This document shows, in pieces, positions 8,315 through 25,504 of a DNA stretch of 25,504 nucleotides (the first letter of the stretch is position 1; each line of letters begins with the position of its first letter). Origin of the DNA: Lepidodermella squamata (Eukaryota > Animalia > Gastrotricha); the NCBI GenBank assembly GCA_047495785.1, contig JBLDXI010000087.1:1-25504 (forward strand), written 5' to 3'. A model generated the notes under the pieces. It was given only the letters and a program-made list of their open reading frames with translations, was not told the DNA's origin and did no database searches. A program made the position numbers and the translations under genes.

Positions 8315-9758
8315 TTGAGCGTTGGGTTGTTCTTCATCATTAGTTTATATCTCCCATTTGGAAAAAGTTCGTCGTAATCGCCACGCACTTTGTCGGGGTC
8401 GAGTTTGCTGGTCTTGAAATTACTCACGAGCCAGAGAGCATAAACAAAATCCTCATTGGTATAGAACGACTCAGGTTGGCTTACCATGATTTGATAGGTG
8501 ACGTACTCCATTTCGGGCAACCGGAGCTTATGGATAAGTGTCAACAACCGGTTATAGGACTCGGAGAAATAGGCATCTGGAAGATCTACCGACGTGCCCA
8601 GGGAGTGATTTCGTTGTCGGGTATAGATCTCATAAAGGCAGCGACCGATCATCGCCTTGATCCATGCGTTTTCGGGATAGATGCGCGAAAGCTGGATGGC
8701 GTGGTAGAGTGCCCGGCTGTAGTTCTTGAAATGAAATTCGGAGTCTACCATCTCGAGTTGAGCTCGTTTCTGATAAACGTTCTTGTTTAGTTTTCGTTCC
8801 TGGTTAAGATCATCGTAGCTGTATCCCATCTGCGCCATGCGCTTGGCCATGGTGATCGTTCGTTCGGTAATGTTAGGATGTGTCGAAAGGCTGTCCGGAA
8901 TCGTTGTGTCCTTTCGCCAGCGGTTGGTGTTCGCATACTCCAGCCACGGAGGTTGTATGGTAACTCCATTACTGACGAGGAACTTTTCCAGGTCGAGTGT
9001 ATCGTAGGGATCCTTATCAGCCCCGCGCAATACCTCCATAGCCTTTAGCGACGAACCTGGATCGTAGCCGGCCTTCAGATACAACACGAGGCCCATGGAG
9101 TCGGCAGAAGTTTCGTGCGAACGACTGTGCGAAGCGAATGCCCGGTCGAGATCCAGCAGCAGTTCGCGCGTTCTTGAATAGTTGTTGTAGCTGCTTCGCC
9201 TGGCCTGGTTGATCTTCTTTCTCGTATCACGGTCATTGAGCATCCGATTTCATCCTCAATTCCGACCACAATGTCTTTCTTCAATGCGTGTGCGAGCTCG
9301 TGGCAAACTATCGTTGCAACCTGATCTTCCGTTTGAAGTCGTGCGAGGAGGCCCAGGTGCACTCCGAGAACGGACTCCCCAAAGCAAATGGCGTTCGGGA
9401 CTTCACTTCTATACGCAAAGATGTTCACATCGCTGGAAGAGAACCCGTTGGCTACCGCAATTCGGTCCACGATGGAAGTCAGATAGTCGCTTAGCTCCGA
9501 CTTCATCATCATTCGGTCCTGGTTGAATTGCTTCAGCGTCGATTCGAAGACGTTCTTGTAGGCCTTCTTGACGTCATTCTTGTGTTTGCTGGTCTTATTG
9601 ATGCTGTTGATCTCCTGGGTGTGCCGGCTTTTCAGTAGCTGATACAGGCCGGGAGTGATCGTGTCCAGGTATGCGGACGGAATGAAATCGTCGGCAGGTT
9701 GTGCATTTATTGGCGCACAGCTGCACAAAACGAGTAGTATGACGATGGGGAGGCGCAT
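8311..9758 (-). CDS. M48 family metallopeptidase, split by a one-base deletion near 9244-9246
   Basis: ORF 9075..9758 gives the signal peptide, PNA and CHELAH (HExxH). ORF 8311..9243 gives E..AD..G, GYDP and STHP...ER. Adding one base at GAA ATC GG ATG joins them. Confidence 0.88.
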
Positions 9759-9771
9759 AATGTACCCGACT

Positions 9772-9779
9772 CAAAAGTA
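9772..9779 (-). promoter_or_regulatory. Bacteroidota housekeeping-sigma -7 element for the M48/DUF6770 operon
   Basis: Minus strand TACTTTTG matches TAnnTTTG, 14 bp upstream of the ATG at 9758. No clear -33 TTTG. Confidence 0.5.
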
Positions 9780-9845
9780 GCGAATCGGCCTTTTATATGG
9801 TGTGGGATTGGAAATATAGGGGGTATAGCATGCGGAGGTTGTTCT

Positions 9846-9917
9846 CACGGATCGCACGGATCGCACGGACACATGCATCGGCAAACCGAACCCAATCGAA
9901 GCACGTCACTTCTGCGG
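9846..9917. repeat. 9-bp tandem repeat (CACGGATCG x2.7) merging into a diverged 60-bp partial copy of the 103-bp repeat unit
   Basis: cacggatcg-cacggatcg-cacggac at 9846-9870. 9858-9917 matches 10071-10131 with a few substitutions and one indel. Confidence 0.85.
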
Positions 9918-10018
9918 CTGCGCCGTCCGCTACCAGAATTTCGGCCCTTCGGGCCTGGCTGGATTACGAAATCCCGCCGTTATAAAATCCGAGCACACGG
10001 ATTATATCGGAACACCTA

Positions 10019-10260
10019 ACTTCTGCGGTTCAATTGTTCAATTGCTCTGCTGTTCTACTGTTCTCTGATGGGATCGCACGGACGCATACATCGGCAAACC
10101 GAACCCAAATCGAAACTCGTCACTTCTGCGGTTCAATTGTTCAATTGCTCTGCTGTTCCATTGTTCTCTGATGGGATCGCACGGACGCATACATCGGCAA
10201 ACCGAACCCAAATCGAAACTCGTCACTTCTGCGGTTCAATTGTTTAATTGCTCTGCTGTT
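10019..10260. repeat. Intergenic tandem repeat, 103-bp unit, about 2.35 copies
   Basis: ACTTCTGCGGTTCAATTG... starts at 10019, 10122 and 10225. Copies differ at a few positions (ctact vs ccatt; gttcaattg vs gtttaattg). Each unit has an internal 8-bp periodicity. Confidence 0.95.
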
Positions 10261-10648
10261 TATTTCGTCCTTTTCCAATACCCAACACATCTCGTGAGAG
10301 TCCCCAGGCACACAATCATCAGCATACTATACTCCACTCCATTCCTCCCTCCTCCTACAACAAACCATCCCTCGTGTGCGTGTATCATTACGATCCCTGC
10401 GATCAGTTGGATCATGAACGCTATACAAAGGATGGATGTCCAGCGGTCGAGAATGATGAGGACGGCAGCAATGATCTCGAAGAATGTAATGATCCAGGCC
10501 GTGAATGGCGGAAAGCCGAATGAGGAAAGCCAGGCGTCGAACGAGCGACACCGCCTACGCTAAGTCGGTATACTCCGTGGATAAGCATGTTTCCGGCGCA
10601 GGCAATGCGCACAATTGCCAACGGAAGCGCGTATTGGGTAATGGGCAT
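10260..10648 (-). CDS. DoxX family membrane protein (~129 aa); one-base deletion at ~10543 and barcode overwrite near its 3' end
   Basis: MPITQYALPLAIVRIACAGNMLIHGVYRL...GGVA. Adding one base continues as PFDAWLSSFGFPPFTAWIITFFEIIAAVLIIL...AGIVMIHAHEGWFVVGGGRNGVEYSMLMIVCL, with typical DoxX R..HG, E and GWF..NGxEY motifs. Confidence 0.88.
10285..10301 (+). other. Untrimmed PacBio barcode bc1003 (+T), copy 1 - technical artefact
   Basis: Exact ACACATCTCGTGAGAGT inside the DoxX 3' end. Identity as bc1003 is from recall of the PacBio barcode set. Confidence 0.88.
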
Positions 10649-10720
10649 AGGCCCTAAAAATACTGTAAGGGCCTTTGAATTGCAGGATCAGATTGGGTAT
10701 AAATTGACAAAAACGCCAAT

Positions 10721-13700
10721 TCAACGCTTCTGAACCTTGACCATCTTAACCCCTTCTGGCAGGAATATCTGCACCAGATAAATTCCAGAGGCGAAAGGCG
10801 ACATATCCAGTTCACCGGTAGTGGCGGTTCCCTGTTGGTTCAGGCGAAGTGTGCCAACTACCTGGCCTGAAAGATTCATCAACTGGACTTTCGTTACAGG
10901 CGCGCGATCGTGGCGGAAATAAAGCACTTCGCTGACAGGGTTAGGATATACGTCGACTGATGCGTCCCAGTCTGACTCGCCGCCTGCCGTTACGTAGATG
11001 AACGATGTCTCCGACATGCACTGTCCCACAGAAACCCGGACTGTATAGTTTCCATCTGTCTTCGGCTTCAGGCTTGACAGCGTATCATTGGCCAACAGTG
11101 CATCATTCAGATACCACTGTTTCTTCCGGGGACGTTGACTGTAAGCGAATCGTTGCGAAGTACAATGATGGGATCGTTGTAGTGTATGACGGTTGCAGTA
11201 ACTGGCACGCGCTCACTTTCGCATCCTGCATTGGTAATGACGGACACATAGAACGTCTGGGTCTTCTGTAGGGTCGGTGTCGTAAATCCACCGCCTGTGA
11301 ACAGAGGACTAGTATCATCTGGTTTCGCATACCATTGGTAACGCTGGCCCGCAGCGGCACCGGTAGCGGTCAACGTGGCGCTTCCTTCCGGCAGATCGAC
11401 GGGCCAACACCGGCTGTGGGCGCGGACACTGTTTCGGAAACAAATGTGACTGTCTTCGTAATCGATTCCCCGCATCCATTGAGCGGAGTTGCCACCACGC
11501 TGACACGATTAATGCCTGTGATCAATGCTTCGGATGAAACAGTAACTCCTATCGATCCACCGTTGCCGGGTTGGGCGGCAATCAAACGTTCATTTACCGA
11601 TACGGAATAACTCGCCAGGCCCGAGGTCTTTGTGAGCTCGATGAGCGCATCCGAACCTTTGCAGACCGTTGTCGCGGAAACCAAATAGTCCATTGGCGCT
11701 ACCTGTCGGACGAATCGCAAAGTAAACCGTGAACTATTACTGCTCGCTGGATTTGTAGTAACGCTGAAGACGTACGTAGAATCAAGCAAAAGGTTGGACT
11801 CTGTTCCGGTGAAGGCATCTGCCAGCGTAATGTCGACGGCATCATTGAATGACGCCAGTTCGCCGAACGTTAATGTATAGTTGCCCGCGGGCACGTTGTC
11901 AAATGCGAGGCCAACTGAAGCCGAGCAAAATGAAGTACTGAGGGAATTGATCGCCAGTTTGTCCTTTCCGGACAGCTGGGTGACACATCTCGTGAGAGTA
12001 CGAATGTGTCGATCAACAAGCCATCTTCGCGGAAATGAACAATAGCCTCGTCCCGTACGCTTCCCTGTGCCAACGTTACACGCACGAAATTCTCGGGGGT
12101 TGTCTTTCTGAAGAATGAGGTCTGAGTACCCGCAACCTTGGTGTTCTCGTTCAATGAAAGTGCCGGTGATGATGACGATGCCTTCACCCAGAAGGCCTGA
12201 CCAGCCGTAATGTATCTTGAACCGCCGTTGGTTCCTACGAGCCCGTTCCAAGTGGGCATATTGGCCACCCGCGACGGCATTGTCGCGTATGTATACCGTG
12301 GCATTGATGTTCGTCTTTGTCCATCCCGTGGCCGCGTTCCAGTCGATGGTAGCGGGATATGGATTACCAACCAGGTTCCACCCGTCGTTGGCGATGGTCC
12401 CCGAAGAGGTGAATGAGACCGGCATGCTGATGAGGCCGCTATTGATCGGTCCACGCAGATCCCACAGCGCTGTGGGGATGAGGTTGCCTCGCACAAACAT
12501 GGCATACCCCCTGCCCGGCTGAAATACTTCGGTGTTCGTAGTGACCGGGAAAGCAACATACCCCCCATCGATGCCGTTCGTGATGACCGTTTCATCGTAC
12601 GAAAACATGGATGCCGTTGTCGTACATCCCGTGCAGAGGCTCCGCCCCGTAAAATTCCCGGAGATGGGTATTTCATTTTGCATATCGGCAACCGTCGCGT
12701 TACGGACCGGAGCAGAGATGTAGCGGTAGATTCTTCCGCCGCTGGCTCCTTCAATTGTCATAAATCGCTGCACGGTGACGTTACCGGTCACACTCGCACC
12801 AGCAGGCAGTGTCGCGATCGCAGCATCCCGGTAGGACTGTCGCCTGTGGAGATGAGTCTCAATACCGAAGAGTTCGAACCTCCATCCGCATCGACGGTAA
12901 CATTCGAAGCAAGCGTCAAGACACCGCGCAGGTTCTGATTCGTTTCCACGCTGACACCCGGCGAACTCAGGTTAGTAACATTCACATTAACGAAATCGGT
13001 AACCGACGAACCTCCAATGTTCTGCGTGCTAGCGCCCTTAAATAGGATGTTGCTCGTCGCGCCGATAGTGAACGTTCCGTTATTGACCCAATGGCCGTTG
13101 AGTCGAAGTGTTGCCAGATTCGGCAATACCGCTGTGGTAGCATTCGTAAGGGTGTTCACCTCCGTGGCCGTCGTTGCACTGAACGTTTTTGACCCGGGAT
13201 TCGAGAGGAGCAGATTGGCATAATCTATCGGCGCGATGGCCTGCGCTCCTCCATTATATTGAACGGTACTGCTTGCGTCGAATGTATAACCAAGCGTGAA
13301 TACCGGCATGGTATTCACTGAGCCAATCACCAGCGTGGTGTTGGCATCCATGCTGAGCGACCCCCCGGTGCCAGTGTTTTCCGTCACACTAAAGCCGAGC
13401 AAGTCCAGCGTTCCTGCATTCACGGTTAGAGTTCGTATGCTGCTGATATTTCCACTTAGAGACAATGTCGATGATGGCTTGTTGATCGACACATTCGTAA
13501 ATCTTGTGGTAACTGGTCCGCCCACCTGGCCTGGTGTGGTGCCGGTGAAGTTCACGGTTGCGTCGCCCGGAAGGAAAGAAGCGTTACTCACCATGTTTCG
13601 CTCCACGTTAAAGTTGGCTGTCGCTTCCACCACTCCGTTCACGCGAATGTCGTAGAAGTTGATTGTGCCGCTGCCGCCGATCTGGGCAGTGTCCACCGGG

Positions 13701-16700
13701 CTTAGTATGAAGGTAGAAGTGTTGCCATCCAGAAGACCGTTTACAAGAAGGTTACTCTTGACCGTATGTGTCCGGCCGCTGCCTGACATGAATCTCGCGT
13801 TCGTCGCAACGGTCAAGTCGCCATTGATATTCAGATCACCTGCTGCGGTGATGCCACTGGCATTTGTATTACTGAATATGACGTCGTTGAATGCGGAAGG
13901 AGTTCCCACAATTGAAAGTGCGTTGGCTCCACCAAACTCAACCGTACCCGTGTTCTGGAAACTGGTGCCCGAGCCTAGTGTGATCACCACCGGCCCTGTT
14001 GCGATCGGTAGGCCTGGGACTATATTAAACTTTCCGCTTCCGGTAACTATTCCGGAATTGGTGAAGGTTGCCCGGAAAGTGTGGTCTGGGGTAGATCCAT
14101 TCCATCTGCCCGACGTGTTCACGGTAAAGTTCCCCACGACCGTCCATGGCTGATTGGCGGTAACTCCTGCTGTGTTGTTGATGGTGACATGCGTGAATGT
14201 CGGAGCGATCGTCGAAACTAATACGGGCGAAACAGAACCGTTGAAAAAAACGGTGTTCGTCAGCGAGGGCGACACCAGTGCTCCATCCTGATCAATTGTC
14301 TGCACCTGAGTTCCTGAAAAGATCACATCTCCATCGCTTCTCAATGTACCATCCAGTATAACATCACCTGAGAAGGTCACCGGGTTGGTGCCGGCATTGA
14401 GAGTTCCCGGAACATTTGCGAGTCCATTAACGGTGAGCGCCGTTCCTGTAGAAGCCGTATAGCTTCCGGAAATGTTTAATGAACTGAAGGTCGTAGAACC
14501 GGTAATTGATTTGCTGGTACCAAGAAGTTCTACGGTTCCGGCAGCGGGCGTGAAGCTCCCGCTATTGGTCCAACTTCCCTGGAGGCTGACCGTACGGCCT
14601 GCCCCGTCGAACGTAGCGCCGGTGTTGATCGTTAGGTCGCCATTTACCTGGATGTCCCCGGCCAGCGACTTTGCAGTCGCTCCGCCATTTGCGAACACAA
14701 GGCTTCCGTACGTCATCGCGGGTACACTCTGCGCAGCGGTTCCATTAAAGATCACGGTGCTATTGGCGGTCAGCAATTGCGCATCATAGTTCGCAGGAAA
14801 ATTCGAGGCGCCGCCCACTCGCAGCGTTGCCCCATCACCAATCGTTAACGTCCCACCTGCAGCACTTCGGTTCACAGAGAAAGCGCCAATATCAAACACG
14901 CCTGAATTGATGGAGAGATCTCCATTGATCACAAGATCATTGGCTGGTGTTACCACGCCTCCAGTCTTGTTGATGACCAGGTCGTTGAAGGTAGTTTGTA
15001 CAATGGTCTGGGTCGCCGCACCATTAAGAACTACCACCCCATCCGCAGAATTGAAGGAGCCCGAACGGTTCCAGTTACCACCTACACGCATGGTGGCGTT
15101 GTTAGTTGTTACGGTCGCACCTGCGCTGATGTCGACATTCCCCGCAACATCAAGTGCTGCGTTGATGTTGACATTGCTCGCACCGGAAACGGTAAGACTA
15201 CCATTAACGGTCGACGCAGTGGGAAGTGTAGCGATACCTGCCGTCTTAAAAATGGCAAGATTGTTATAGGTTAAGCCCCCGGCGATGACCTGGTCTACCG
15301 TCCCATTATAAGTCACCGTACCCGTGCCTGCCGAAAATGTACCCGCCGTATAATTGAATGCATTACCGATCAACAGGTTTCCGTTGCCTGTAAACGACAC
15401 AGAACCTGAACCGGACTGATTGAGGGAACCGGAAATAGTGATCGTACCCGTCGACAGCGAAAGCTGAATGCTACGCGTTGCGCTGCCGTTACTTAACGTG
15501 ACATCACCTCCCACGGAAAGCGAGCGTGCACCGACCGCGATTGCATGTACCTGATCGGCAAGCCAGTCGCCCGTCATATTTCCAGTCACGTTCAAAGATC
15601 CTGCACCGCCTCCTATCGTAAGTGTAGCCGCCTTGATACTCCCGAAGAAGATCGACTTGGAAGTAACAGCGGTAGTGATCGTTGGCTGATTGGTGAAAGT
15701 TTCTGTACCGATGAGAATATTGTCATTAACACCCGGAACGACTCCCGACTTCCAGTTGCTCGCTGTGTTCCATGCCGTGCTGGTTGTGCCCTTCCACACC
15801 TGAATGGTACTTCCGTCAGAGAATGTCCAGCGGCCCGTGATATCGGTAAATGAAGTCTGTTGAACCCAGTTATTATTTACGTCATTAGCCGATTTTCCGG
15901 CAGTAACCCAACCGCCAGAGAATCGCCACAGGCTCATGTTGGCTTCGGCGTTTCCATTCAACTCCGTATCCTCGTAGTGCATGCGAACGTTTGCTACGTA
16001 AGAGCCAATGCGCGTAACGTTGACTGTGTAAGATCTATTGACGGACGCCTGTGCCGGAAAGTCCGAAACGGTGGCCGAAACGACGTTGACCGTTACGGAT
16101 GTGACAGAACCACTGATGCTGGTGAACGTGATGGTATTGAACGAACTCTCGAAAGCATATGCGGTATTCGCCAGGAATGTATGCGTGCGCGTGATCGTAC
16201 CCAGGATCACGGCGTTGCCGGTCCTCGTCCCCGTGATCGTCACGGAATTGGCGCCTGTCAACATCCTGCCATTCGTCATGGTCAGGTTGTTGGTGGTGAT
16301 GCTATTGTTCAGCGTTACCGTGGTGGTAGTCGTGCTCTTGTTCAACGTCAGGTTATTGAACGTCGTGGTGCCCGTGGTTGATGTGTTAAGCGCTCCATTG
16401 AAGGCAACCGTGCTCGTCGCCGGCACGAACGTTCCATTGTTGATCCAGTTTCCGCTTACCGTATGCGTGAAGGTGGCCCCATTGAAGGTAACACCTGGAT
16501 TGATGGTTAGATTGCTACCCGTCGTCGTTGCTCCGGCCGCTGTCTTGGTACCGCCTGTGGCAAGGATCAGGTTGTTGTACGTGGCTGCCGCAATGTTCTG
16601 ATTTCCGGATCCATTATATACGAATGTGTTGGGTGTCGTCGTAGTTGTATTGAGCGTACCCGCTGTGATCGTGAAGGCACCGGCAACGCGCAGTGTGGCA

Positions 16701-18544
16701 TTGGCTGCGAGTTGCAGTCGGGTGCCATTGATGGTTACGTTGAAGAGATCGTGTGTTCCACTCACGAGTGAGGTGCCAATAAAGCTCACAGTTCCCGCAG
16801 TGGCCGTGAGTTTGCCCGTTCCGGATACAGCAGACCTGATTGAAATATTGACTGCAGTACTTACCTGTCCATTGAGTTGCAGCGCAAAGAAGGTCGTCGA
16901 ACCGGCTCCGCCAATTACTGGCGACGCACCGGAGAATGTGATCGTTCCTGCCGTCGCATCGAATGTACCCGTGGTTGTCATGTTGCTGCGGATCGTGATC
17001 GGCACACGCGCAGACACTGTTCCGGATACCACCAGGTTAAATAACGAGTGGCCTGTTCCGGTGATGGTCTTGGTCGCGCCCGAAAGAGTGAGCGTGCCTC
17101 CATCGTTGTGAGTAAATGTTCCCGTGCCGGTGGTTGCCAGGTTGCCGGTCACAGTTACACTGGTCGACGAACAGGTCACCCCTGCTCCTGTCACCGTCAG
17201 GTTATTGAAGTTCAGAACTCCCCCGCCGCTGATCACACGTGCGGCACCAGTGAAGCGCGCCGTTCCCGTGTTGCCATTAAAGATACCGGCGTTACTAAAG
17301 TTACCTGCGAAATTGTGGGTTCCAGCTCCTGCATTGAAGGTAGTCAGGTTACCCAGGCTGACGTTACCAGATACGGTAAGCGCCGCAGTTGCAGTAAGTG
17401 TGAGCGAAGAGGCACTTCCGAGCGTGGCCGTGAGATCACCGGCAACGGTCATAGCGGTAGCTGGAAATGTCTTGATTACGCCGCCCGTTGTCCCGCGGAG
17501 CACCAGGTGACCGTACGTCTTGCTCGAGATCGCCTGGTTGGTTCCTCCATATACAACCTGACTTGTAGCTCCAAGAGTATACGTGTTATAGTTGGCCGGG
17601 AATGTGTTGGTTCCTCCGATAATCAACTGCGCTCCATTGGAAACGACGAAGGTACCACCACCGGTCGCGTTACGGTTGAGTGTGAACGCTCCGATATCCA
17701 GCGTTCCGGCATTTAGATTGACACGACCCGCTGCTGCAGAGGTAGACTGCATCACTGTATTGGCGGCCAGTGTTTTTACAGAACCCCCGCTGATCGTCAG
17801 CGTTCCGTAACTAAGTGTAGCGATCGTCTGACTGGTCGACGTTGCTGCGTATTCCACAACACTCGTCGCGTTAAGCGTTGGATTAATGGAATAGTTGCCG
17901 GAGAAGAGTGAAGCAAATACCCTGATCCTGCCACCACCGTTCACCGTAAAAGTTGAGCCTGCGAGTGTGACGAGGTTGGTAGATGTCACCGGGTCGAATA
18001 TACCACTCACCACAAACGCATTCACCACTGTGATGCTGGCACCCAGCGATGTCGTACTACCGGAATTGATCGTGAGCCGGCGAAAACTCGTCGCACTGTT
18101 GATCGCCTGTGTGGTGCCCGAGAAAACCACAGTTGCCCCGGCAACGGTCGGATTGTAGGTTCCGGTATTCGTCCAGTTTCCCCGTAGACTGATCGTGTTG
18201 GCAGTATGCCGAAGCGTACCTAGTGCGGCGATATTCAGATTGCTGTTGACGTTCAGCAGGGCGTTGACCGTAAGAGTCGTTGCCCTCGTTCCACCACCGA
18301 CAGTAAGTGATCGGCAAGCGGCCGTTGCTGTTACAGAGGGTTGGAATGTTCCTGTGAAGTTGGCGTCTCCCACGATGGCATCCAGGGTTGCTGTGGGGAC
18401 TCCATTTGTCCAGTTCGCGGCCGTGGCCCAGGCAGTGCTGGTGGTTCCCCGCCAACACATCTCGTGAGAGTCACTCAGGGAGGTCAGAAGCATTAAGAAA
18501 AAGACAATAAGAAGCCGATACTCAGTAACTCGCTGAGAGATCAT
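10721..18544 (-). CDS. Giant (~2600 aa) T9SS type A-sorted surface protein with T/G/N/S-rich beta-strand repeats, an Ig-like domain and a C-terminal sorting domain; broken by indels at ~12829, ~12255, ~11390 and ~11125 and by the chimeric patch at 11983-12025
   Basis: ORFs 12788..18544, 11370..12791, 11870..12754, 11107..11475 and 10721..11095 join into one logical protein: ...DAAIATLPAGASVTGNVTVQR...GWNLVGNPYP...YATWNG...GQAFWVK...FTTPTL..T.TFYVS...VYPNP...SGIYLVQI...KVQKR. It has an N-terminal signal peptide. Confidence 0.88.
11983..11999 (+). other. Untrimmed PacBio barcode bc1003 (+T), copy 2 - technical artefact
   Basis: Exact ACACATCTCGTGAGAGT inside the T9SS gene at a reading-frame break. 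Confidence 0.88.
11999..12025. repeat. 27-bp perfect inverted copy of 13473-13499 (probable chimeric read end)
   Basis: tacgaatgtgtcgatcaacaagccatc is the reverse complement of gatggcttgttgatcgacacattcgta and directly abuts barcode copy 2. Confidence 0.9.
18455..18471 (+). other. Untrimmed PacBio barcode bc1003 (+T), copy 3 - technical artefact
   Basis: Exact ACACATCTCGTGAGAGT. It yields the residues DSHEMC where the signal-peptide cleavage site of the T9SS protein is expected. Confidence 0.88.
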
Positions 18545-18671
18545 AACATTGGGGGTGTTTCACAAATCCGTCCTCGCCTCTTGCCTTGTGGGCAAACTAC
18601 ATCCAATGCCAGCTCAGGCCCGTTTTACCAGGCTCTTCATTTTAAGGTTTTAGGCTACCAGATGGGCGCTA

Positions 18672-18679
18672 CAAAGATA
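18672..18679 (-). promoter_or_regulatory. Bacteroidota -7 promoter element for the giant T9SS gene (leader of about 120 nt)
   Basis: Minus strand TATCTTTG is a perfect TAnnTTTG match in an AT-rich intergenic region. Confidence 0.6.
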
Positions 18680-18792
18680 GGAACTTGTTGGAACGCCTAA
18701 TAGAAAATATTCAATTATCACACAGTTCTTACACCAAAAGCACATGATGATGCGTTTTTGACCCAATTTCCCATTGTGTAAGAATTACACGT

Positions 18793-18845
18793 GGCAGAGG
18801 AGGCCCGGAATGTCTTGAAAAAGACATCCTGCGGCATCCCTTGCC
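18793..18845. terminator. Long imperfect stem-loop 18 bp downstream of the crystallin gene stop (terminator or mRNA 3' structure)
   Basis: Core ATGTCTT-GAAA-AAGACAT, extended imperfectly out to GGCA...TGCC. No clear U-tract on either side. Confidence 0.35.
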
Positions 18846-18863
18846 TCGCAAGTTGGGCGACGG

Positions 18864-20786
18864 CTATTTGCCCTTAAGAAACTGATTGAACGCGTTGCGG
18901 GTAGACATGAACTTGAAGACATCCTCCAGGAGGTAATACTCCGACTTCTCCTGTGACAATTCGTACGCGTATTTGACGAATTCCAGGGTTTGGTCTTCAT
19001 TCATAAACAGGCCTGCGATCGTGCGAATCTGCAACACCGACAGGCAGCGGTCCTTGGTCGACAGTTTTGCTGCAGTCATCATCTCATCCATGAAGTGCTT
19101 CGACTCAATTGCCTTGTAGGCCGCCTGAAACTGGGTAGTGTTCATCTCACAGGATGGCTGGGTTTCTTCTACCGTAACAATGGTGGGTACCGGGGTCGGC
19201 TCCGGAGTTGTAATGACCGGTGGCGGCGTGTTTGTAATGGTCTCGACGATCAGCGACGAGGTGCGATTGTCGAATGCTCTCGAAGCGATCAGATCGACGT
19301 TGGCTTCTGCTGTGAGCGAGTAACCTTTGAATCCATCGTCTTCGAAGAGTATCAGTCGAAGCCCATGAGGTACGGTAGCAGAACTGATCTTGTTGTCCCC
19401 TATGGTGAGATCTTTCAACGCATAACGGCCAACTGGCAATGTCTGCGATGCTCCGGAGAATCCGTCGGCATAGACAATCACGGCAGGACCTGAGGGCGCT
19501 GCTTCTTCAACAACTTCGGCAACAACGATCGACGATGTTTCATTGTTGAATGAACTGGACGAAAGAACATCAGTGCCCGTGTCACGCGTAAGTGTGAGAC
19601 TTCGCCCACCGAAGCGTTCGTCTTCATACAGAGTAACGGTCAATCCCTTTGGCACCCGTACGGATGACAACTGGTCGTTACCGATACCAAAGTCGTGACC
19701 CGGGTACCGACCGGGCAGCAATCTCGCTGATACGCCTCCATAATCGCCTTCATATACAGTCGCCATCAATAGGGCCTCTACCCAAACGGAAGAAGTAAGA
19801 TTATTGAAATTGTTTTCAACAAAGAAGGATGCCCTGGAATCCTGAGTGATGACAATCGACTTGCCCTCGAACGCGTCTCCGTCGTAGAGGGTCACCCGAA
19901 ATCCTTTGGGGACCTTGATCGACGACAGTTCGTCGTTGGCGATCCCAAGTTTGTCGCGACTGTATCTGCCTGGGGACAAGCTCATGGAAGGACTGGAAAA
20001 GTCGCCCTGGTACAAGATCGGCTCGGTTGGTTCCTGGATGACCGGATCGGCAACAGGGACGGTGGTTGTTGTGGTAGTTACGGTGGGCTCCGTCGTCACT
20101 ACGGGAGTAATGACCGGTGACTCTTTCTCTGTGGGCTGTTGTTTTACGATCGCCTGTTCTACAAGTATACTGGAAGTCTGGTCGTTAAACTTCTTACTGA
20201 TTAGCATGGCAGCCCGGGTGTCGGTCGTAAAGGAAACACTTCGTCCCTTGAAGCCGCCGTGCTCGTAAAGCGTGACCTTCATATTGGCAGGAATCTTTAA
20301 TGATGAAAGCTGGTCGTTGCCGACTTCACCGAGGTCGTTGACATCATAGCGACCAGCAACGAGGTTCTTGGACGCACCTGAGAAATCATTCTTGTAGATG
20401 ATAACGAAGGTGCCAGGTGCGGGTAACTCCGTTTCCGGTATCTTCTCTACGATGATAGAAATGTTCATGGTGATCTGTGCGAATCCCTTTGCTTCAAGTT
20501 GCGACTGCTTCGTATTCTCTGTGAGAGTTAACGAAGTGCCTTCGAAGTTGTCGCGTTCAAACAGGATCGCTCTCATGCCCGAAGGCACCTTGACAGACTT
20601 GACGGCCATGTTGCCGGCGCGCACGAGATACATATAGTCGTACTTGCCCGGTGCGAGTTCAAGCTTGTTCCCGGCGAAGTCATCTGAATACACGGTGACC
20701 TTGTCGTTTGAATTCTGGGCAATAGCTACAGAAGGATGCACACAGTACAAGCACAGGATGCAGACTGCGAGAAGGGTGATTCTCAT
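18864..20786 (-). CDS. Secreted protein with five beta/gamma-crystallin (Protein S-like) domains, P/T-rich linkers and a C-terminal DUF4476-like domain (640 aa)
   Basis: Likely start at MRITLLAVCILC (20786). Five repeats of V..Y..DF.G.S..L..G.Y...NDxxSSxxVP.G..V.L(Y/F)E...F.G.S...FNxxTSS. Ends in M...F...KAI...F.DE...A...CLSV.QI..I...F..ED..LEF.KYAY. Confidence 0.88.
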   Translation of the reverse strand: MRITLLAVCILCLYCVHPSVAIAQNSNDKVTVYSDDFAGNKLELAPGKYDYMYLVRAGNMAVKSVKVPSGMRAILFERDNFEGTSLTLTENTKQSQLEAKGFAQITMNISIIVEKIPETELPAPGTFVIIYKNDFSGASKNLVAGRYDVNDLGEVGNDQLSSLKIPANMKVTLYEHGGFKGRSVSFTTDTRAAMLISKKFNDQTSSILVEQAIVKQQPTEKESPVITPVVTTEPTVTTTTTTVPVADPVIQEPTEPILYQGDFSSPSMSLSPGRYSRDKLGIANDELSSIKVPKGFRVTLYDGDAFEGKSIVITQDSRASFFVENNFNNLTSSVWVEALLMATVYEGDYGGVSARLLPGRYPGHDFGIGNDQLSSVRVPKGLTVTLYEDERFGGRSLTLTRDTGTDVLSSSSFNNETSSIVVAEVVEEAAPSGPAVIVYADGFSGASQTLPVGRYALKDLTIGDNKISSATVPHGLRLILFEDDGFKGYSLTAEANVDLIASRAFDNRTSSLIVETITNTPPPVITTPEPTPVPTIVTVEETQPSCEMNTTQFQAAYKAIESKHFMDEMMTAAKLSTKDRCLSVLQIRTIAGLFMNEDQTLEFVKYAYELSQEKSEYYLLEDVFKFMSTRNAFNQFLKGK

Positions 20787-20847
20787 GGAGAGGGTTTTTA
20801 GGTTAACTAAGGTAATCTTATTTCCGGAAACATGCATTCACTGAGTC

Positions 20848-21459
20848 CTATGGCCCTTGCTTCAGGAAAACGAGAGGGTTGTAAAAGTGCTTCTGCAACT
20901 CTGCCTCGGTGTGACACATCAGGGTGTAGGAAACATAGTGACGGGTCGGTGTCCTTCTATCCGGAGCAAGTTTCATGGGTGAGCTCCTGAGTACCTCGAA
21001 GTGAAAGTGATCGAACTGCCAGCCAAATCGATTGAGTTCGTCCTTGTTCATGAACCGGGCAATGACGGTTTTCGGATTCACCGGATCACCCGGCTTCACA
21101 CGTATTCCTGCAACATGTTCGTAGACGGTCCAGAACCTGGTTTGATTCAGTTCGTGGGCAATGATGACTTGTGCATACGGCCCATCGTTGCGGGTACTGA
21201 TCACAACGCCGTCGGTAATGGGAAGAATGGGCTCTTCCTTATAGTTGGCTCCAGGCCTGGCGATGTCGATCCCCGTGTGAAGATGAGCGGGTACCGTTTT
21301 GCGTGCCTTGCGCGGTAGTCCAAATTGACCAATATCAGTGAGGCGCAATGTACCAGTCGATCGGCGGTTTTCGGCGTGAACAGGAAGCAAAGGAAGTGGA
21401 TCACCAGGACCGAATGCGAGGGAGAAAAGAACGAGTGGAGCAATCGGGAGTGCGAGCAT
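20848..21459 (-). CDS. M23 family metallopeptidase (peptidoglycan endopeptidase-like)
   Basis: HTGIDI (HxxxD), DGVV, YEHV, V..GD.V and HFHFEV (HxH) motifs; hydrophobic N-terminus. Confidence 0.9.
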   Translation of the reverse strand: MLALPIAPLVLFSLAFGPGDPLPLLPVHAENRRSTGTLRLTDIGQFGLPRKARKTVPAHLHTGIDIARPGANYKEEPILPITDGVVISTRNDGPYAQVIIAHELNQTRFWTVYEHVAGIRVKPGDPVNPKTVIARFMNKDELNRFGWQFDHFHFEVLRSSPMKLAPDRRTPTRHYVSYTLMCHTEAELQKHFYNPLVFLKQGP

Positions 21460-21497
21460 AATTTCCTGCCAGGATATCCTTCAATCCCTGGCAACTC

Positions 21498-22538
21498 CTA
21501 AAGTTCCATTGGGGCACCCGAACTTCCAAAACCCAGGCCCAGGTAGTTCTTGATGAGCTCGACCGCCATCCCTCCTATGGTGTTGACTGTGATGTCACCG
21601 AGACCCTTGGTGAGTGTTTGTTTTACCGTGTCCAGTTTTTTGACTGGATCCTGACCTGCCTTTTCCTCCCTGACCAACTTGATAAGTTCCTGAATGAGGG
21701 CACGATCGATTTCCAGATCATCCAACCTTCGTTCCAGTTCCGGAAGATTTCCCTGGACCTTCACCCGGATATCAACCGGGTTTACAAAAACATTCAACTG
21801 CTGCGAAGGTGACGCAGGCTGAACGTGGGCACGGGAGTCATGAGCTCCCGAAGCCTGTCCGCTTTTCTTCGAATTTCGTTTCGATCGCATGAGCTCGATC
21901 TCTCGCTTAATGCTATCCTGAACTTCCGGCGTCATCGACTCAAAAATAAGATTGACATCCTTATCTAATCGTAGGTCGAGGCCCGTCACGTGATATTCCT
22001 TCTTATTCGATATTTTCTGAAATGCCAACTGACTGGGAAAAGCCTGGCATGTAAGTTTTATTTTCTTGTGATGTGCACGTCTCAGATCTTTGTGAACGAA
22101 TGTAACGATCTCTATCTGGTGGTTTTTTCCGTGCCGCTCAAAGAAAGCGCCAGGATACACACGTACCAGTTTGTACTCAGATGACCAGTAGTCGATAATC
22201 CCGAGTTCAATCGAAAGATCCACGTAATTGTTCATAAACTTGATCAACCCGCTCTTGACCTGCTTGGGGTTAACGTCGTAACTAATCTCCATCCGATCAA
22301 TTCTCTCGCTGAGCGACATGCCGCTCAAAAAGTGTCCCTTTGAAACGTCAATAAACGCGATGTTGTGGAAATACACGAAAAAGTTGTCGGGATCGAACGC
22401 AGCAAGCTCCGCCAGTTGCCAAAGCCTTTCGCGCAGCACCGTGAGTTTGAACGGGTCCAGTTCCGTAGTCACTTCAATTCGAAAGCCAAGATACGTCTCT
22501 ATATTCATGATGATCCGGGTACAATGGAAAAAGCCCAC
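21498..22538 (-). CDS. Hypothetical cytoplasmic protein (346 aa; alternative start MNIETY at 22508) with an AbiTii-like C-terminal helical tail
   Basis: Long uninterrupted ORF, AT-richer than its neighbours, with its own promoter-like motif. C-terminus GN...L...L....I....IQEL..LV.EE...GG...ELIKNYLGL. The similarity to AbiTii tails is by eye only. Confidence 0.65.
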   Translation of the reverse strand: MGFFHCTRIIMNIETYLGFRIEVTTELDPFKLTVLRERLWQLAELAAFDPDNFFVYFHNIAFIDVSKGHFLSGMSLSERIDRMEISYDVNPKQVKSGLIKFMNNYVDLSIELGIIDYWSSEYKLVRVYPGAFFERHGKNHQIEIVTFVHKDLRRAHHKKIKLTCQAFPSQLAFQKISNKKEYHVTGLDLRLDKDVNLIFESMTPEVQDSIKREIELMRSKRNSKKSGQASGAHDSRAHVQPASPSQQLNVFVNPVDIRVKVQGNLPELERRLDDLEIDRALIQELIKLVREEKAGQDPVKKLDTVKQTLTKGLGDITVNTIGGMAVELIKNYLGLGFGSSGAPMEL

Positions 22539-22574
22539 GCTCCTTCCTTTCGTAGAAAGAGCAATGGGCTCAGT

Positions 22575-22606
22575 TAAAGATAAATATTGATACCGGATCG
22601 CTCCAA
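22575..22606 (-). promoter_or_regulatory. Promoter-like motif for the 21498..22538 gene
   Basis: Minus strand TTGG-N20-TATCTTTA, close to the Bacteroidota TTTG-N19-21-TAnnTTTG consensus. Confidence 0.5.
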
Positions 22607-22736
22607 CAAAACCTGGATGTTGTTTTTCGGGCCTATTGAAAATATCCAGATCAACCTTGCAACTACCTAAATTCCGGCATGTGTACCTCCCCGAAAACCG
22701 GTAGTCTAAATTACCTCTTCACTTTACGTGTCTATA

Positions 22737-22769
22737 CTGGCAAATTCCCGTAGCTATTCCTTATCTTTA
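22737..22769 (+). promoter_or_regulatory. Promoter-like motif for the membrane protein/amidohydrolase operon
   Basis: CTGG-N21-TATCTTTA (22762-22769), with the same -7 variant as the divergent promoter. Confidence 0.45.
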
Positions 22770-22775
22770 GCTAAG

Positions 22776-22821
22776 AGCCCTTGCCGGATACAGAACTGTC
22801 CGGCAAAGGGCTTTTTTATTT
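22776..22821 (+). terminator. Intrinsic-terminator-like hairpin with U-tract in the 5' leader of 22831..23856
   Basis: AGCCCTTGCCGGA (22776-22788) pairs with TCCGGCAAAGGGCT (22799-22812, one bulge), followed by TTTTTTATTT. It ends about 10 bp before the ATG. Confidence 0.65.
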
Positions 22822-22830
22822 ACACCCACT

Positions 22831-23856
22831 ATGGACATACTTAACAATCCTACTGTTGAAGTAGTACTGAGCCTTATCGTTACATGGGCTCTGTTTGCCA
22901 TCCTTTGCAGCTTCGGCCATGAGATCATTGCCGAGATCATCGCCGAACGTGGCCGATTTCTGAAAAAGAAGATTCACGATCAATTGGTCGACCGTCCCAA
23001 CCGTGTAAACTGGGCAACGGCGCTGTACAACCATGGTTCCATCGATCTCCTGAGTCGCGCGGACAATAAGCCAAGTTCCGATATTCCTGCGAAGCTCTTC
23101 GCTGAAGTGATCGTCGAGAATGTGGCCACATCGCAACTCGTACAGATGCACATCCGCGGGCCGCTGGGCGACAATGCCACTCCGGAAGAAAGAGCGTTCC
23201 GGGAAACATACAAGAAGATTCCGTACCAGAACCAGGTGTTGAGGGATTTCAAGGCCGCCACCATGGTGCTGAAGCCAAGCGATGTGATGACGATGTACAA
23301 GCAGGCGCTGGCTTCGGCGGAACTCCGGGCGGGCTCGGCACAAGCTCCAGAGTTTGAGGCTAACGTATACAAATACCTGATCGAGAATATATGCAATTGG
23401 TACGACTCATTTTCGGGACGTATGTCGGCCTGGTACAAGAAGCGCACCCGGATGCGCCTGTTCCTCATGGGTATATTCGTGGCTGGCTTGTTTCAGATCG
23501 ACTCGATCCAGCTGTACCAGTTCTACCGCAGCCAGCCCGAAGCACGCGCTACCGTCATCCAGTACTTTAAGGAGAACATTGATGAACTTGAGCAGAAGTA
23601 TGTAAACGACACTACTTCCGATGCGCAACATCGTAAAGAACTGTACGACGAATTCAAGAGAGAGATGTCGGCTGTCTCCAAGTCGATCGACCTTCCCATT
23701 GGATGGGATAAAGCCGACCTCGATCGGCCAGATCGCGAACCTTACTGGTCGTGGATAGCCAAAATCCTTGGCATCCTTCTCACGGCACTCGCCGGAAGTT
23801 ACGGCGCCCCCTTCTGGTTCGAACTATTCAGAAAATTCACTCAACGTAAATCCTGA
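22831..23856 (+). CDS. Uncharacterised multi-pass membrane protein with C-terminal LPIGW...GAPFWF motif (341 aa)
   Basis: N-terminal TM helix followed by E.I...RG..L, WY......S.WYK..TR, second TM with IDSI, LPIGW, and third TM GILLTALAGSYGAPFWFELF. I recognise this as a widespread hypothetical family with no function known to me. Confidence 0.85.
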   Translation: MDILNNPTVEVVLSLIVTWALFAILCSFGHEIIAEIIAERGRFLKKKIHDQLVDRPNRVNWATALYNHGSIDLLSRADNKPSSDIPAKLFAEVIVENVATSQLVQMHIRGPLGDNATPEERAFRETYKKIPYQNQVLRDFKAATMVLKPSDVMTMYKQALASAELRAGSAQAPEFEANVYKYLIENICNWYDSFSGRMSAWYKKRTRMRLFLMGIFVAGLFQIDSIQLYQFYRSQPEARATVIQYFKENIDELEQKYVNDTTSDAQHRKELYDEFKREMSAVSKSIDLPIGWDKADLDRPDREPYWSWIAKILGILLTALAGSYGAPFWFELFRKFTQRKS

Positions 23857-23862
23857 CATAAC

Positions 23863-25170
23863 ATGCAGTATTACAACGTCCACACGCATACCTTCAGCAC
23901 ATACGACTTGCCGGAGGACTTCCTGAAGCTCTATCTTCCCTCCTTCATCGCTACGCCGGTGGATGCCATCACCGATACGAAGGTGGGTTCCTTTATTGTC
24001 CGGGGTTTGCTGAGCACCTTAGGCGGCAATGGAGGCAGACGCTATGCGGACTTCCTTCATGTAGGTAAGAGCAGGACACAGAAGGAGGTATTTGAAATCC
24101 TCATGGACTCGGTGGCCGACGATCCGAGCATGCGACACATCGCGCTCACCCTGGACATGGAGCACATTGGGGCAGGTCCCTCCAAGACCCTTTTTGCAGG
24201 ACAGGTGGAAGACATTCTGAACCTCAAGAAGGAATACGATGACAACCTGCTCATTTTCCTGGGTGTAGATCCACGCTGGAAAGGGACAGGCACCGATATC
24301 CGCAAAACGGTTGAAGGCTACTTTAACACCAAACTGTACGTCAACGAGCTCAAACAAGTCAACCCCTTCGTAGGACTGAAGCTGTATCCAAGCACCGGCT
24401 TCTATGTGTTCGACGAAAAACTGAAGGAGACCCTCCAATGGGCTGCAGATAATGGGGTGCCCGTGATGAGTCACTGCAGCTACCTGGGTGGAGTCTTCAA
24501 TAACGTGGAGAAAGCGATCCGCAACGCGCTCAATCCGCGAAACGTGTACGACAACGGGGCGGTCTATTCGCAGGCCGGTTATATCAAGAAGAACAAGTTC
24601 TTCCGGAAGCTGGTGAACACCAACACCTCGCGGAACAACCTGATGACGTGTTCCTATTTCCTGGAGCCCAGCACCTACGAATACCTCTTCCGTTATTTCG
24701 AGCGGCAGTTCAATGAATTTGAAAGAAGGAACGATCCTCTGAAGATCTGCATGGCCCACTTCGGTGGAGGCAACCAGGTGGAGGTAGCTGTGCTTGGCAC
24801 AGATGGTCGCAAGAAGCCAGATCAGGAAGAATTGACTCCCTACGGGGTTACCGGTGCTAACTGGTATCGTAAGATTCAACAGTTGCTTACCCAGTATAGG
24901 GGTGCGTATACGGACATCTCCTATGCAGTTTCCAACCCCGATCTCTTCGATGCATTCCACAGCGACGTGAACAATCCGGACTATGGCGACCGCGTGATGT
25001 TCGGTACCGACTTCTTTATGACGGAGCGCGTGCGCAGACACAACGAAGTGTACGAAGCGTTCAAATCGTTCGCAGTGAACAAGGATCTCAGTAACTACCC
25101 GGGTACGAAGCTATGGGATAAAGTAGCTGGAACTAATGTCGAGAGATATCTGAGGAGTGCGTATTTCTGA
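23863..25170 (+). CDS. Metal-dependent amidohydrolase (TIM-barrel, Amidohydro_2-like), 435 aa
   Basis: NVHTH, LGVDPR, GLKLYP..GF, PVMSHC, CMAHFGG, YTDISY and VMFGTDF motifs; starts 6 bp after the upstream stop. Confidence 0.9.
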   Translation: MQYYNVHTHTFSTYDLPEDFLKLYLPSFIATPVDAITDTKVGSFIVRGLLSTLGGNGGRRYADFLHVGKSRTQKEVFEILMDSVADDPSMRHIALTLDMEHIGAGPSKTLFAGQVEDILNLKKEYDDNLLIFLGVDPRWKGTGTDIRKTVEGYFNTKLYVNELKQVNPFVGLKLYPSTGFYVFDEKLKETLQWAADNGVPVMSHCSYLGGVFNNVEKAIRNALNPRNVYDNGAVYSQAGYIKKNKFFRKLVNTNTSRNNLMTCSYFLEPSTYEYLFRYFERQFNEFERRNDPLKICMAHFGGGNQVEVAVLGTDGRKKPDQEELTPYGVTGANWYRKIQQLLTQYRGAYTDISYAVSNPDLFDAFHSDVNNPDYGDRVMFGTDFFMTERVRRHNEVYEAFKSFAVNKDLSNYPGTKLWDKVAGTNVERYLRSAYF

Positions 25171-25255
25171 CCTGTTGTAAATTTTTGTGAGGTGCAGGAT
25201 TGGAGAAAACAATAATCAGGTTGTTGTCTATATTTAGGCCACAATTCTAATTCAT

Positions 25256-25487
25256 ATGCTACGGCTACTTCTGATTTCCGCCCTCACCCTGTCGGTACTC
25301 TTTTCAAACGCACAGCAGATTAACGAACCGAAAGGTATTCCGGAATGGTCGCAGCCCTACGAACCGTTTCGGGTTGTCGGGAATATCTACTACGTTGGCA
25401 CCTACGATCTTGCCTGCTACCTGATCACCACCCCGAAGGGGCATGTGTTGATCAACACCGGGCTTGCCGCTTCCCTCGATCCCATCC
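25256..25487 (+). CDS. bla: Subclass B3 metallo-beta-lactamase (GOB/FEZ-like), 5' fragment truncated at the contig end; not in the ORF track
   Basis: Hand translation: MLRLLLISALTLSVLFSNAQQINEPKGIPEWSQPYEPFRVVGNIYYVGTYDLACYLITTPKGHVLINTGLAASLDPI. This is a signal peptide plus the W...PFR..GN.YYVGTYDLA.YLI.T..G..LINTG signature of GOB-type enzymes. Confidence 0.88.
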
Positions 25488-25504
25488 ACTCTCACGAGAT
25501 GTGT
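25488..25504 (-). other. Untrimmed PacBio barcode bc1003 (+T), copy 4, reverse complement at the sequence terminus
   Basis: ACTCTCACGAGATGTGT forms the final 17 bases, the orientation expected at the right end of a symmetrically barcoded read. Confidence 0.9.

Follow-up and report, generated by a model that had tools for sequence, protein, structure and literature searches.

Probable remnants of the PacBio barcode bc1003 in a thinly covered bacterial contig from the Lepidodermella squamata assembly

The window, i.e., the whole stretch of 25,504 nt analyzed here, contains four exact copies of the 17-mer ACACATCTCGTGAGAGT, which are almost certainly the stem ends of the synthetic PacBio adapter bc1003, built into a thinly covered bacterial contig as an artefact of assembly. 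The identity of the motif with the end of a printed adapter oligonucleotide, its absence from independent sequence at all four sites and the genuine bases lost from the genes concerned carry this reading, and they uphold the opinion of the initial annotation that the motif is not a biological repeat.

The 17-mer and its identity with an adapter end

Even when two mismatches are allowed, the 17-mer has exactly four matches in the window, all of them exact, while the expectation by chance from shuffled sequence is about 0.02 and four matches were reached in none of 100 shuffles. The count and arrangement initially proposed therefore stand, with three forward copies and one reverse complement at the end of the sequence. 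The forward copies are all internal and the sole reverse copy lies at the right end, its last base being the final base of the window, an orientation that fits the geometry of reads. Shorter fragments of the barcode (10-mers) are found nowhere else in the window. The copies and the genes that they affect are the following:

10285..10301, plus strand: copy 1, probable barcode remnant (bc1003 + T), exact match
11983..11999, plus strand: copy 2, probable barcode remnant, exact match
18455..18471, plus strand: copy 3, probable barcode remnant, exact match
25488..25504, minus strand: copy 4, probable barcode remnant (A + reverse complement of bc1003), exact match
10260..10648, minus strand: DoxX-family membrane protein gene (Pfam PF07681), disrupted both by copy 1 and by the lack of a G after 10542
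10721..18544, minus strand: gene for a giant surface protein sorted by the T9SS, about 2608 codons long, recognized from homologues and from Por_Secre_tail and Ig_7 domains in its pieces
25259..25487, plus strand: metallo-beta-lactamase-fold (MBL-fold) gene, first 76 codons, cut by the contig end; the protein of a related genome (L015) is identical there

The oligonucleotide bcAd1003 is printed with the indication "barcode = ACACATCTCGTGAGAG"; its 3' end reads ...GAGAGAGAT-ACACATCTCGTGAGAG-T and its 5' end ACTCTCACGAGATGTGT (bioRxiv 10.1101/2023.02.19.526140). In a second paper, the same 16-mer is used as "bc3" of the standard barcode series, where the bc1002 sequence precedes it and that of bc1004 follows. 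The 17-mer corresponds to the last 17 bases of bcAd1003, namely the 16-nt barcode followed by T, and its reverse complement to the first 17 bases, so that every one of the 17 bases in the copies matches the oligonucleotide, in either orientation. The proposed assignment to bc1003 is thus confirmed in print. The same holds for the extra T, which had been attributed to an adapter overhang: it belongs to the stem end of the adapter in both orientations, and it is present (as A on the other strand) on the insert side in all four copies. Unlike the oligonucleotide, the window lacks the stem bases GAGAGAGAT before the barcode, which agrees with removal of the adapter but not of the barcode. Regarding the 45-nt SMRTbell hairpin, not one of its 12-mers occurs anywhere in the window.

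In public sequence, the 17-mer is rare. It has nine matches in 596 Gb of genomes, where by our own arithmetic a random 17-mer should occur roughly 70 times, and six in JGI metagenomes; the window's own assembly is in neither of these collections, and both scans speak only to rarity. None of the 15 matches in the two large collections comes from a relative of this bacterium. Where the 17-mer recurs in these collections, its flanks are homologous, whereas the flanks of the four copies in the window are mutually unrelated and show no target-site duplication, terminal repeat or shared flank structure, in agreement with the initial annotation, which had reported no target-site duplication.

Genes interrupted by the four copies

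Several sources of sequence were compared with the window around the copies. The first, X1, is the probable source run of the window and was read as Logan contigs, from which words seen once are dropped. Two others are independent: X2 is a 36-kb contig with a depth of 22 and X10 is a second sample. The comparison with the independent samples at the DNA level covered 6 kb and concerned copies 1 and 2. Both X2 and X10 span these two copies and are collinear with the window on both sides, with different letters in place of the 17-mer, and the letters of X2 restore uninterrupted reading frames through both. Altogether, the 17-mer is absent from independent sequence at four of four sites, as judged from X2 and X10 (copies 1 and 2), homologous proteins (copy 3) and L015 (copy 4). 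Its presence at the same positions in relatives, which according to the initial annotation would speak against an artefact, was looked for in X2, X10 and L015 and is found in none of them.

Copy 1 lies within the C-terminal part of the DoxX gene, where it takes the place of 11 nt on the minus strand and is read as TLTRCV. At this site X2 has ATCCCCACCGC, translated as ...MLMIVCLGAVGIGYWKRTK*. The DoxX domain (PF07681) was recognized on the minus strand at 10260-10541 (25.9 bits against a cut-off of 23.6; 1.6e-5) after the piece had been re-cut at the frameshift; as first cut, the short DoxX and MBL fragments had no Pfam match with E <= 0.01. After 10542, both X2 and X10 contain one more G than the window, and the X1 contigs break at this position; an X1 contig starts at exactly 10302, the first base beyond copy 1.

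The giant T9SS gene contains both copy 2 and copy 3. Homologues of its product are 2615-2624 aa long and harbor PF18962 and PF19081; the pieces in the window carry Por_Secre_tail and Ig_7 domains. In the window, this gene is present as four open reading frames, split by copy 2 together with one-base errors at 11125, 11387, 12254, and 12829 (indels called relative to X1, X2, X10, and X11). Copy 2, located in the C-terminal part of the gene, replaces about 21 nt and thereby shifts the reading frame. X2 and X10 have other letters there, with extra bases at 11981 and 11990, and those of X2 can be read in a single frame straight through (...VHFREDGLFIDALVPTRFNVSTQLSGKDKLAINSL...). The X1 contig agrees with the window up to 11982, after which 13 letters differ. 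Three more mismatches to X2 follow just after the copy, at 12002, 12007, and 12014, and may reflect differences between strains or errors at the start of a read.

Copy 3 comes directly after the signal peptide of the same protein and overwrites, in frame, the start of the mature protein, where it is read as DSHEMC. The comparison with homologues was made here at the protein level only: the window has SLSDSHEMCWRGTTS where 13 homologues have ...QTTSWRGT.S, the T and S of the QTTSW motif being at least 90% conserved and the W invariant. No public sequencing run is listed for the words found only at the junctions of copy 3, which is weak evidence as only five words were sampled.

The residues at copies 1 and 3 that had been described as out of character for their coding sequences are indeed read there, TLTRCV in DoxX and DSHEMC after the signal peptide. 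Two other descriptions hold only in part. The genes concerned are indeed unrelated when DoxX, the T9SS gene and the terminal MBL-fold gene are considered, but copies 2 and 3 share one gene of about 2600 aa. Similarly, the collinear flanks in X2 and X10 agree with the motif replacing sequence rather than being inserted into it, although the length replaced is 11 nt at copy 1 and about 21 nt at copy 2, not 17.

Regarding copy 4, the L015 contig (NCBI GCA_044229015.1, 95% nucleotide identity) was found through a 98%-identical homologue of the 435-aa amidohydrolase of the window and covers the window from 19079. It aligns up to 25487 and then continues GGAAGAATATTGAAACG.... In L015, the full-length gene encodes 286 aa with a Lactamase_B domain and is identical to the window over the first 76 codons; the 82-aa MBL fragment of the window has no Pfam match and was identified via L015. 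The 203-aa gene at 20848-21459 was not on record in an exact-protein look-up. Taken together, X2, the homologues and L015 confirm that the barcodes corrupt the DoxX and T9SS predictions and truncate the beta-lactamase, as had been anticipated.

Read depth and the origin of the copies

The very low coverage invoked in the initial annotation is found in X1, with a word depth of 0 at 9000-9799, 2.0 at 10400-11999, and 2.8 beyond. The X1 contigs are otherwise identical to the window and none of them spans a barcode copy; the motif is unsupported in X1 contigs at a depth of at least 2. The proposed correspondence between the copies and read ends agrees with the borders of X1 contigs at 10302 and 11982 and with the reverse copy, which lies at an end where L015 continues. 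Moreover, the window holds eight one-base errors, seven of which are in runs of G or C, creating false frameshifts and indicating sequence left at the level of uncorrected reads. The window disagrees at 12254 and 12829 even with X1 contigs supported by at least two reads.

A plausible course of events can be proposed. The terminal T of the adapter pairs with the A-tail of the insert. The hairpin part would be removed when reads are made, and the barcode would be left because demultiplexing or clipping was skipped or failed; every read would consequently start with barcode and T and end with A and the reverse-complemented barcode. With the contig covered by one to three reads only, there would be no consensus to outvote the read ends. 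The assembler would then have composed the contig from successive read prefixes, switching at the very first base of the next read, so that the barcode would displace a roughly equal number of genuine bases, while the last read, written to its very end, would leave its reverse copy where the contig stops. We infer such behavior from a string-graph layout of the miniasm or hifiasm type, with individual reads presumably starting at 10285, 11983, and 18455 and one ending at 25504. As X1 was read as Logan contigs, these starts and ends are taken from contig borders and depth steps. The replaced lengths of 11 and about 21 nt, instead of 17, would require that overlaps were only imprecisely placed where one read gives way to the next. 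No barcode is present at the left end of the window, which would count against an artefact if the window is a whole contig.

It has been documented that HiCanu, hifiasm, and IPA build adapter sequence into the contigs of HiFi assemblies (Sim et al., 2022, HiFiAdapterFilt, PMC8864876). As in that case, library sequence on HiFi reads damages otherwise correct contigs. However, the published case deals with the 45-nt hairpin adapter, a UniVec entry that is screened at submission. The window has barcode and T only, located where reads would hand over and where the contig ends and not inside missed-adapter palindromes. A missed-adapter palindrome or hairpin contamination (UniVec "PacBio Blunt Adapter") was also considered for the window and rejected in view of the collinear flanks and the lack of hairpin sequence.

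Other readings and consequences for annotation

Two further explanations were weighed, which together leave only a slight chance that strains or loci are invisibly joined at the barcodes or, more remotely, that a real element matches the adapter by accident. It is very improbable that the contig is chimeric, i.e., that unrelated molecules, strains or loci were stitched together at the barcodes and the contig order is wrong. The cluster of mismatches after copy 2 could be seen as the trace of such a join, and if this were true the gene order or the parts of the T9SS gene would form a mosaic existing in no cell. Yet the 36-kb X2 contig is collinear over copies 1 and 2, except for the copy number of a 103-nt repeat array, and the giant gene keeps its expected order and length over copies 2 and 3, with about 2608 codons where the homologues have 2615-2624 aa; neither palindromic structure, as left by a missed adapter, nor hairpin sequence is present.

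Least probable of all, and hardly credible, is a genuine dispersed element, such as a recombination or att site, the footprint of a miniature mobile element or a gene-conversion tract, resembling the barcode by coincidence. Four exact copies within 25.5 kb would suit such an element, as would the reading frame that stays open at copies 1 and 3. A short exact motif recurring locally, once inverted, is likewise reminiscent of REP/MITE-like elements and of att or dif-like sites. In contrast to these, however, the copies replace coding bases, even overwriting the conserved QTTSW motif at copy 3, and come without duplications, terminal repeats or shared flanks. X2, X10, and L015 lack the 17-mer at these positions, no related genome in 596 Gb has it, and the X1 contigs give it no support at a depth of at least 2. 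The identity with synthetic DNA extends over 17 of 17 bases, with the T and the orientation included, and the sequence stops exactly where the motif ends.

The 17-mers hold no new biology and their value is in quality control. A 17-nt barcode stub may be misread as an att site, as a dispersed repeat or as the scar of a mobile element, and such a stub, being short and probably also unfamiliar to them, likely passes standard adapter screens. The gene models damaged here are those of DoxX, of the T9SS protein of about 2600 aa (N-terminus and C-terminal part) and of the MBL-fold protein (end of the gene). The contig is effectively single-read sequence. One-base errors, mostly in homopolymer runs, account for its apparent pseudogenes, i.e., an M48 peptidase, DoxX, and the split T9SS gene, which are artefacts. 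Any junction, inversion or frameshift found beside the 17-mer in this assembly should be distrusted pending a check of the reads.

With regards to the neighboring 103-nt repeat array, a search of the whole window with Rfam returned no family, so the array is left unnamed; its copy number differs between X2 and the window.

Identity and distribution of the 17-mer

The initial annotation had read a 17-mer as the untrimmed PacBio barcode bc1003 built into the contig, and all four copies it named are exact in the window:

10285-10301, forward strand: copy 1 of ACACATCTCGTGAGAGT, exact match
11983-11999, forward strand: copy 2 of ACACATCTCGTGAGAGT, exact match
18455-18471, forward strand: copy 3 of ACACATCTCGTGAGAGT, exact match
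25488-25504, reverse strand (reverse complement): copy 4 of ACACATCTCGTGAGAGT, exact match

Copy 4 ends on the final base of the window, while the left end carries no barcode. No fifth copy was found in the window with two mismatches allowed, nor any partial copy (10-mer) elsewhere in it; the chance expectation is 0.02 matches in dinucleotide-preserving shuffles, 0 of 100 of which contained four. The four copies have mutually unrelated flanks and, in agreement with the earlier claim of no target-site duplication, none of them adjoins duplicated bases.

The 16-mer was looked up by full-text literature search. It is the barcode printed for the SMRTbell adapter oligo 'bcAd1003' ('barcode = ACACATCTCGTGAGAG'), which starts with 5'-ACTCTCACGAGATGTGT, continues through the hairpin ATCTCTCTC...GAGAGAGAT and finishes with ACACATCTCGTGAGAGT-3' (bioRxiv 10.1101/2023.02.19.526140). 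In a second paper the identical 16-mer is 'bc3', with the bc1002 and bc1004 sequences as series neighbours, and the bc1003 assignment is thereby borne out. Because the printed oligo ends in ACACATCTCGTGAGAGT, the 17-mer is the whole stem end of the adapter, and the extra T, rightly ascribed to the adapter, is its terminal 3' base. Reverse copy 4 at the window end is the opposite end of the oligo. No 12-mer of the hairpin is present anywhere in the window, and a barcode without hairpin is the look expected of reads with the adapter removed and the barcode unclipped. Barcode clipping is normally the job of the demultiplexer lima, and hifiasm has an option for trimming read ends in such cases; bc1003 is one of those supplied with PacBio's barcoded overhang adapter kits.

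Sequence at the four sites in independent relatives

A search of public runs revealed near-identical DNA in several studies, and the contigs of four runs were aligned on window 9000-14999. Run X2 (other organism label, 2019, depth 22) crosses this interval with one 36-kb contig, collinear with the window either side of copies 1 and 2, except that a tandem-repeat array differs in length by 325 nt. The genes holding copies 1 to 3 are:

minus strand: DoxX-family gene with copy 1 in its C-terminal part (Pfam DoxX, 25.9 bits, above cut-off)
12788-18544, 11370-12791, 11107-11475 and 10721-11095, minus strand: ORFs of a giant T9SS gene, together ~2608 codons

At copy 1, X2 has 11 nt (ATCCCCACCGC) in place of the 17-mer, and with these letters the DoxX tail reads ...MLMIVCLGAVGIGYWKRTK*. 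At copy 2 it has ~21 nt and one uninterrupted frame, reading ...VHFREDGLFIDALVPTRFNVSTQLSGKDKLAINSL...; the reading frame of the window switches at the barcode. Strain differences or errors at a read start may account for three mismatches against X2 immediately after copy 2 (12002, 12007 and 12014). A bioreactor metagenome, X10, likewise carries letters other than the 17-mer at copies 1 and 2.

Copies 2 and 3 both lie inside the giant gene, so the earlier description of the copies as falling in unrelated genes is only partly right: it stands for the DoxX, T9SS and metallo-beta-lactamase-fold genes and fails for these two copies. ORFs 11107-11475 and 10721-11095 encode a CHU_C-associated Ig-like domain (PF19081) and a T9SS C-terminal sorting domain (PF18962), and the closest homologues of the gene, 2615-2624 aa long, each carry both domains in one protein. 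The copy 3 site was compared at the protein level: the window reads SLSDSHEMCWRGTTS, and 13 aligned homologues read ...QTTSWRGT.S, with W invariant and T and S at least 90% conserved. No public run was listed for five sampled junction-only words of copy 3, which is weak evidence. Just upstream of the giant gene, 18864-20837 (minus strand) encodes a protein of 657 aa that has two beta/gamma-crystallin domains and carries DUF4476 at its C-terminus.

Copy 4 directly follows codon 76 of the metallo-beta-lactamase-fold gene. Contig L015 (NCBI GCA_044229015.1), which carries a 98%-identical homologue of a neighbour protein, shares 95% nucleotide identity with the window as far as 25487; past this point L015 has the remainder of a 286-aa Lactamase_B gene and the window has the 17-mer, then stops. 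The proposed truncation of the beta-lactamase by the motif is thus confirmed. The motif is absent from independent relatives at all four sites, since X2 and X10 (copies 1 and 2), the homologues (copy 3) and L015 (copy 4) differ from it; with genuine sequence in its place and collinearity around copies 1 and 2, it replaces sequence rather than inserting, as had been suggested. The full-length gene (L015:5233-6093) has the metal-binding motif Q-A-H-Y-D-H, Gln first, which we take to resemble a subgroup of subclass B3 enzymes, its beta-lactamase activity being putative.

Read depth and sequence quality

The best holder of the sampled words (0.87) is X1 (2024; Logan contigs), a probable source sample or sister of the source since its contigs between barcodes are identical to the window. 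Its word depth agrees with the very low coverage previously supposed: 0 at 9000-9799, 2.0 at 10400-11999 and 2.8 beyond. Since words seen once are missing from Logan contigs, a depth of 0 stands for one read at most. One X1 contig starts exactly at 10302, the first base past copy 1; another matches to 11982, the last base before copy 2, then has 13 letters unlike the window, and the following contig picks up again near 12020. No barcode junction occurs in the X1 contigs of 9000-14999. Such a pattern would arise if every copy were the start of a read whose barcode had not been trimmed; barcode-to-insert words would then occur once, and depth would gain one read after the copy.

Compared with X2 and X10, the window is one base short after 9243, 10542, 10694, 11125, 11387, 11981 and 12829, and has one base too many at 12254. 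Seven of these eight errors lie in G or C runs; the base missing at 10542 is the second G beside a single G. Breaks between X1 contigs coincide exactly with error sites, and at 12254 and 12829 X1's own contigs (at least two reads) contradict the window. The errors produce apparent frameshifts, and with them the pseudogene look, in the M48 peptidase (9075-9758), DoxX and the ~2608-codon T9SS gene. The contig is thus a string of single reads left without correction, and it is in such sequence that barcodes at read ends survive.

Origin of the copies and of the contig

Taken together, the synthetic identity of the motif, the replacement of genuine bases, its absence in relatives and the very low depth leave little doubt that the copies are an assembly artefact and not a real feature. 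String-graph layout (miniasm or hifiasm style) writes the non-overlapped prefix of each read and then carries on with the following read, starting at its first base. The contig would have been written in this way, prefix by prefix, with a short unaligned overhang at the start of each read tolerated by the assembler; the 17-nt barcode would thereby displace about 17 genuine bases, and the final read would be written to its very end. The replaced lengths (11 nt at copy 1, about 21 nt at copy 2, and 17+3n nt) are unequal, which fits if overlap coordinates are approximate. For the hairpin adapter, HiCanu, hifiasm and IPA are documented to build adapter sequence into HiFi assemblies (PMC8864876); the window shows the same fault with the barcode alone.

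Every test of the motif contradicts its reading as a biological repeat or an att site, and so does its rarity: 596 Gb of genomes (185,579 species represented) contain 9 matches and JGI metagenomes 6. Three Poseidoniales/euryarchaeote contigs from marine MAGs (L002:143-159; L004:22-38 and 1963-1979; L006:6780-6796) show what genuine recurrence looks like, their homologous flanks pointing to one conserved gene, whereas the copies in the window have the motif alone in common. A chimeric join of sequences at the barcodes is unlikely in the window, given that X2 is collinear with it and that the giant gene has the expected length and order; such joins may occur in other pieces of the assembly. Biological interest is low; the practical value is a warning for the assembly and for gene calls in the window.

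The window is bacterial, with Bacteroidota-type T9SS proteins and a Cyclobacteriaceae MAG as nearest named match (75% aa identity). As runs under three different organism labels also contain near-identical DNA, and so do bioreactor and biofilm metagenomes, the bacterium either lives in association with the sequenced animal or is a contaminant. Its tandem array of a 103-nt unit (9858-10260; copies 10006-10108 and 10109-10211, partial units both sides) stops 25 nt short of copy 1, is 325 nt shorter in X2 and has no Rfam match. In X1, X2 and X10 alike, word depth in the array is 5-9 times the flanking value, and the array is joined to many other places, which makes it a multi-copy dispersed repeat of the bacterium.
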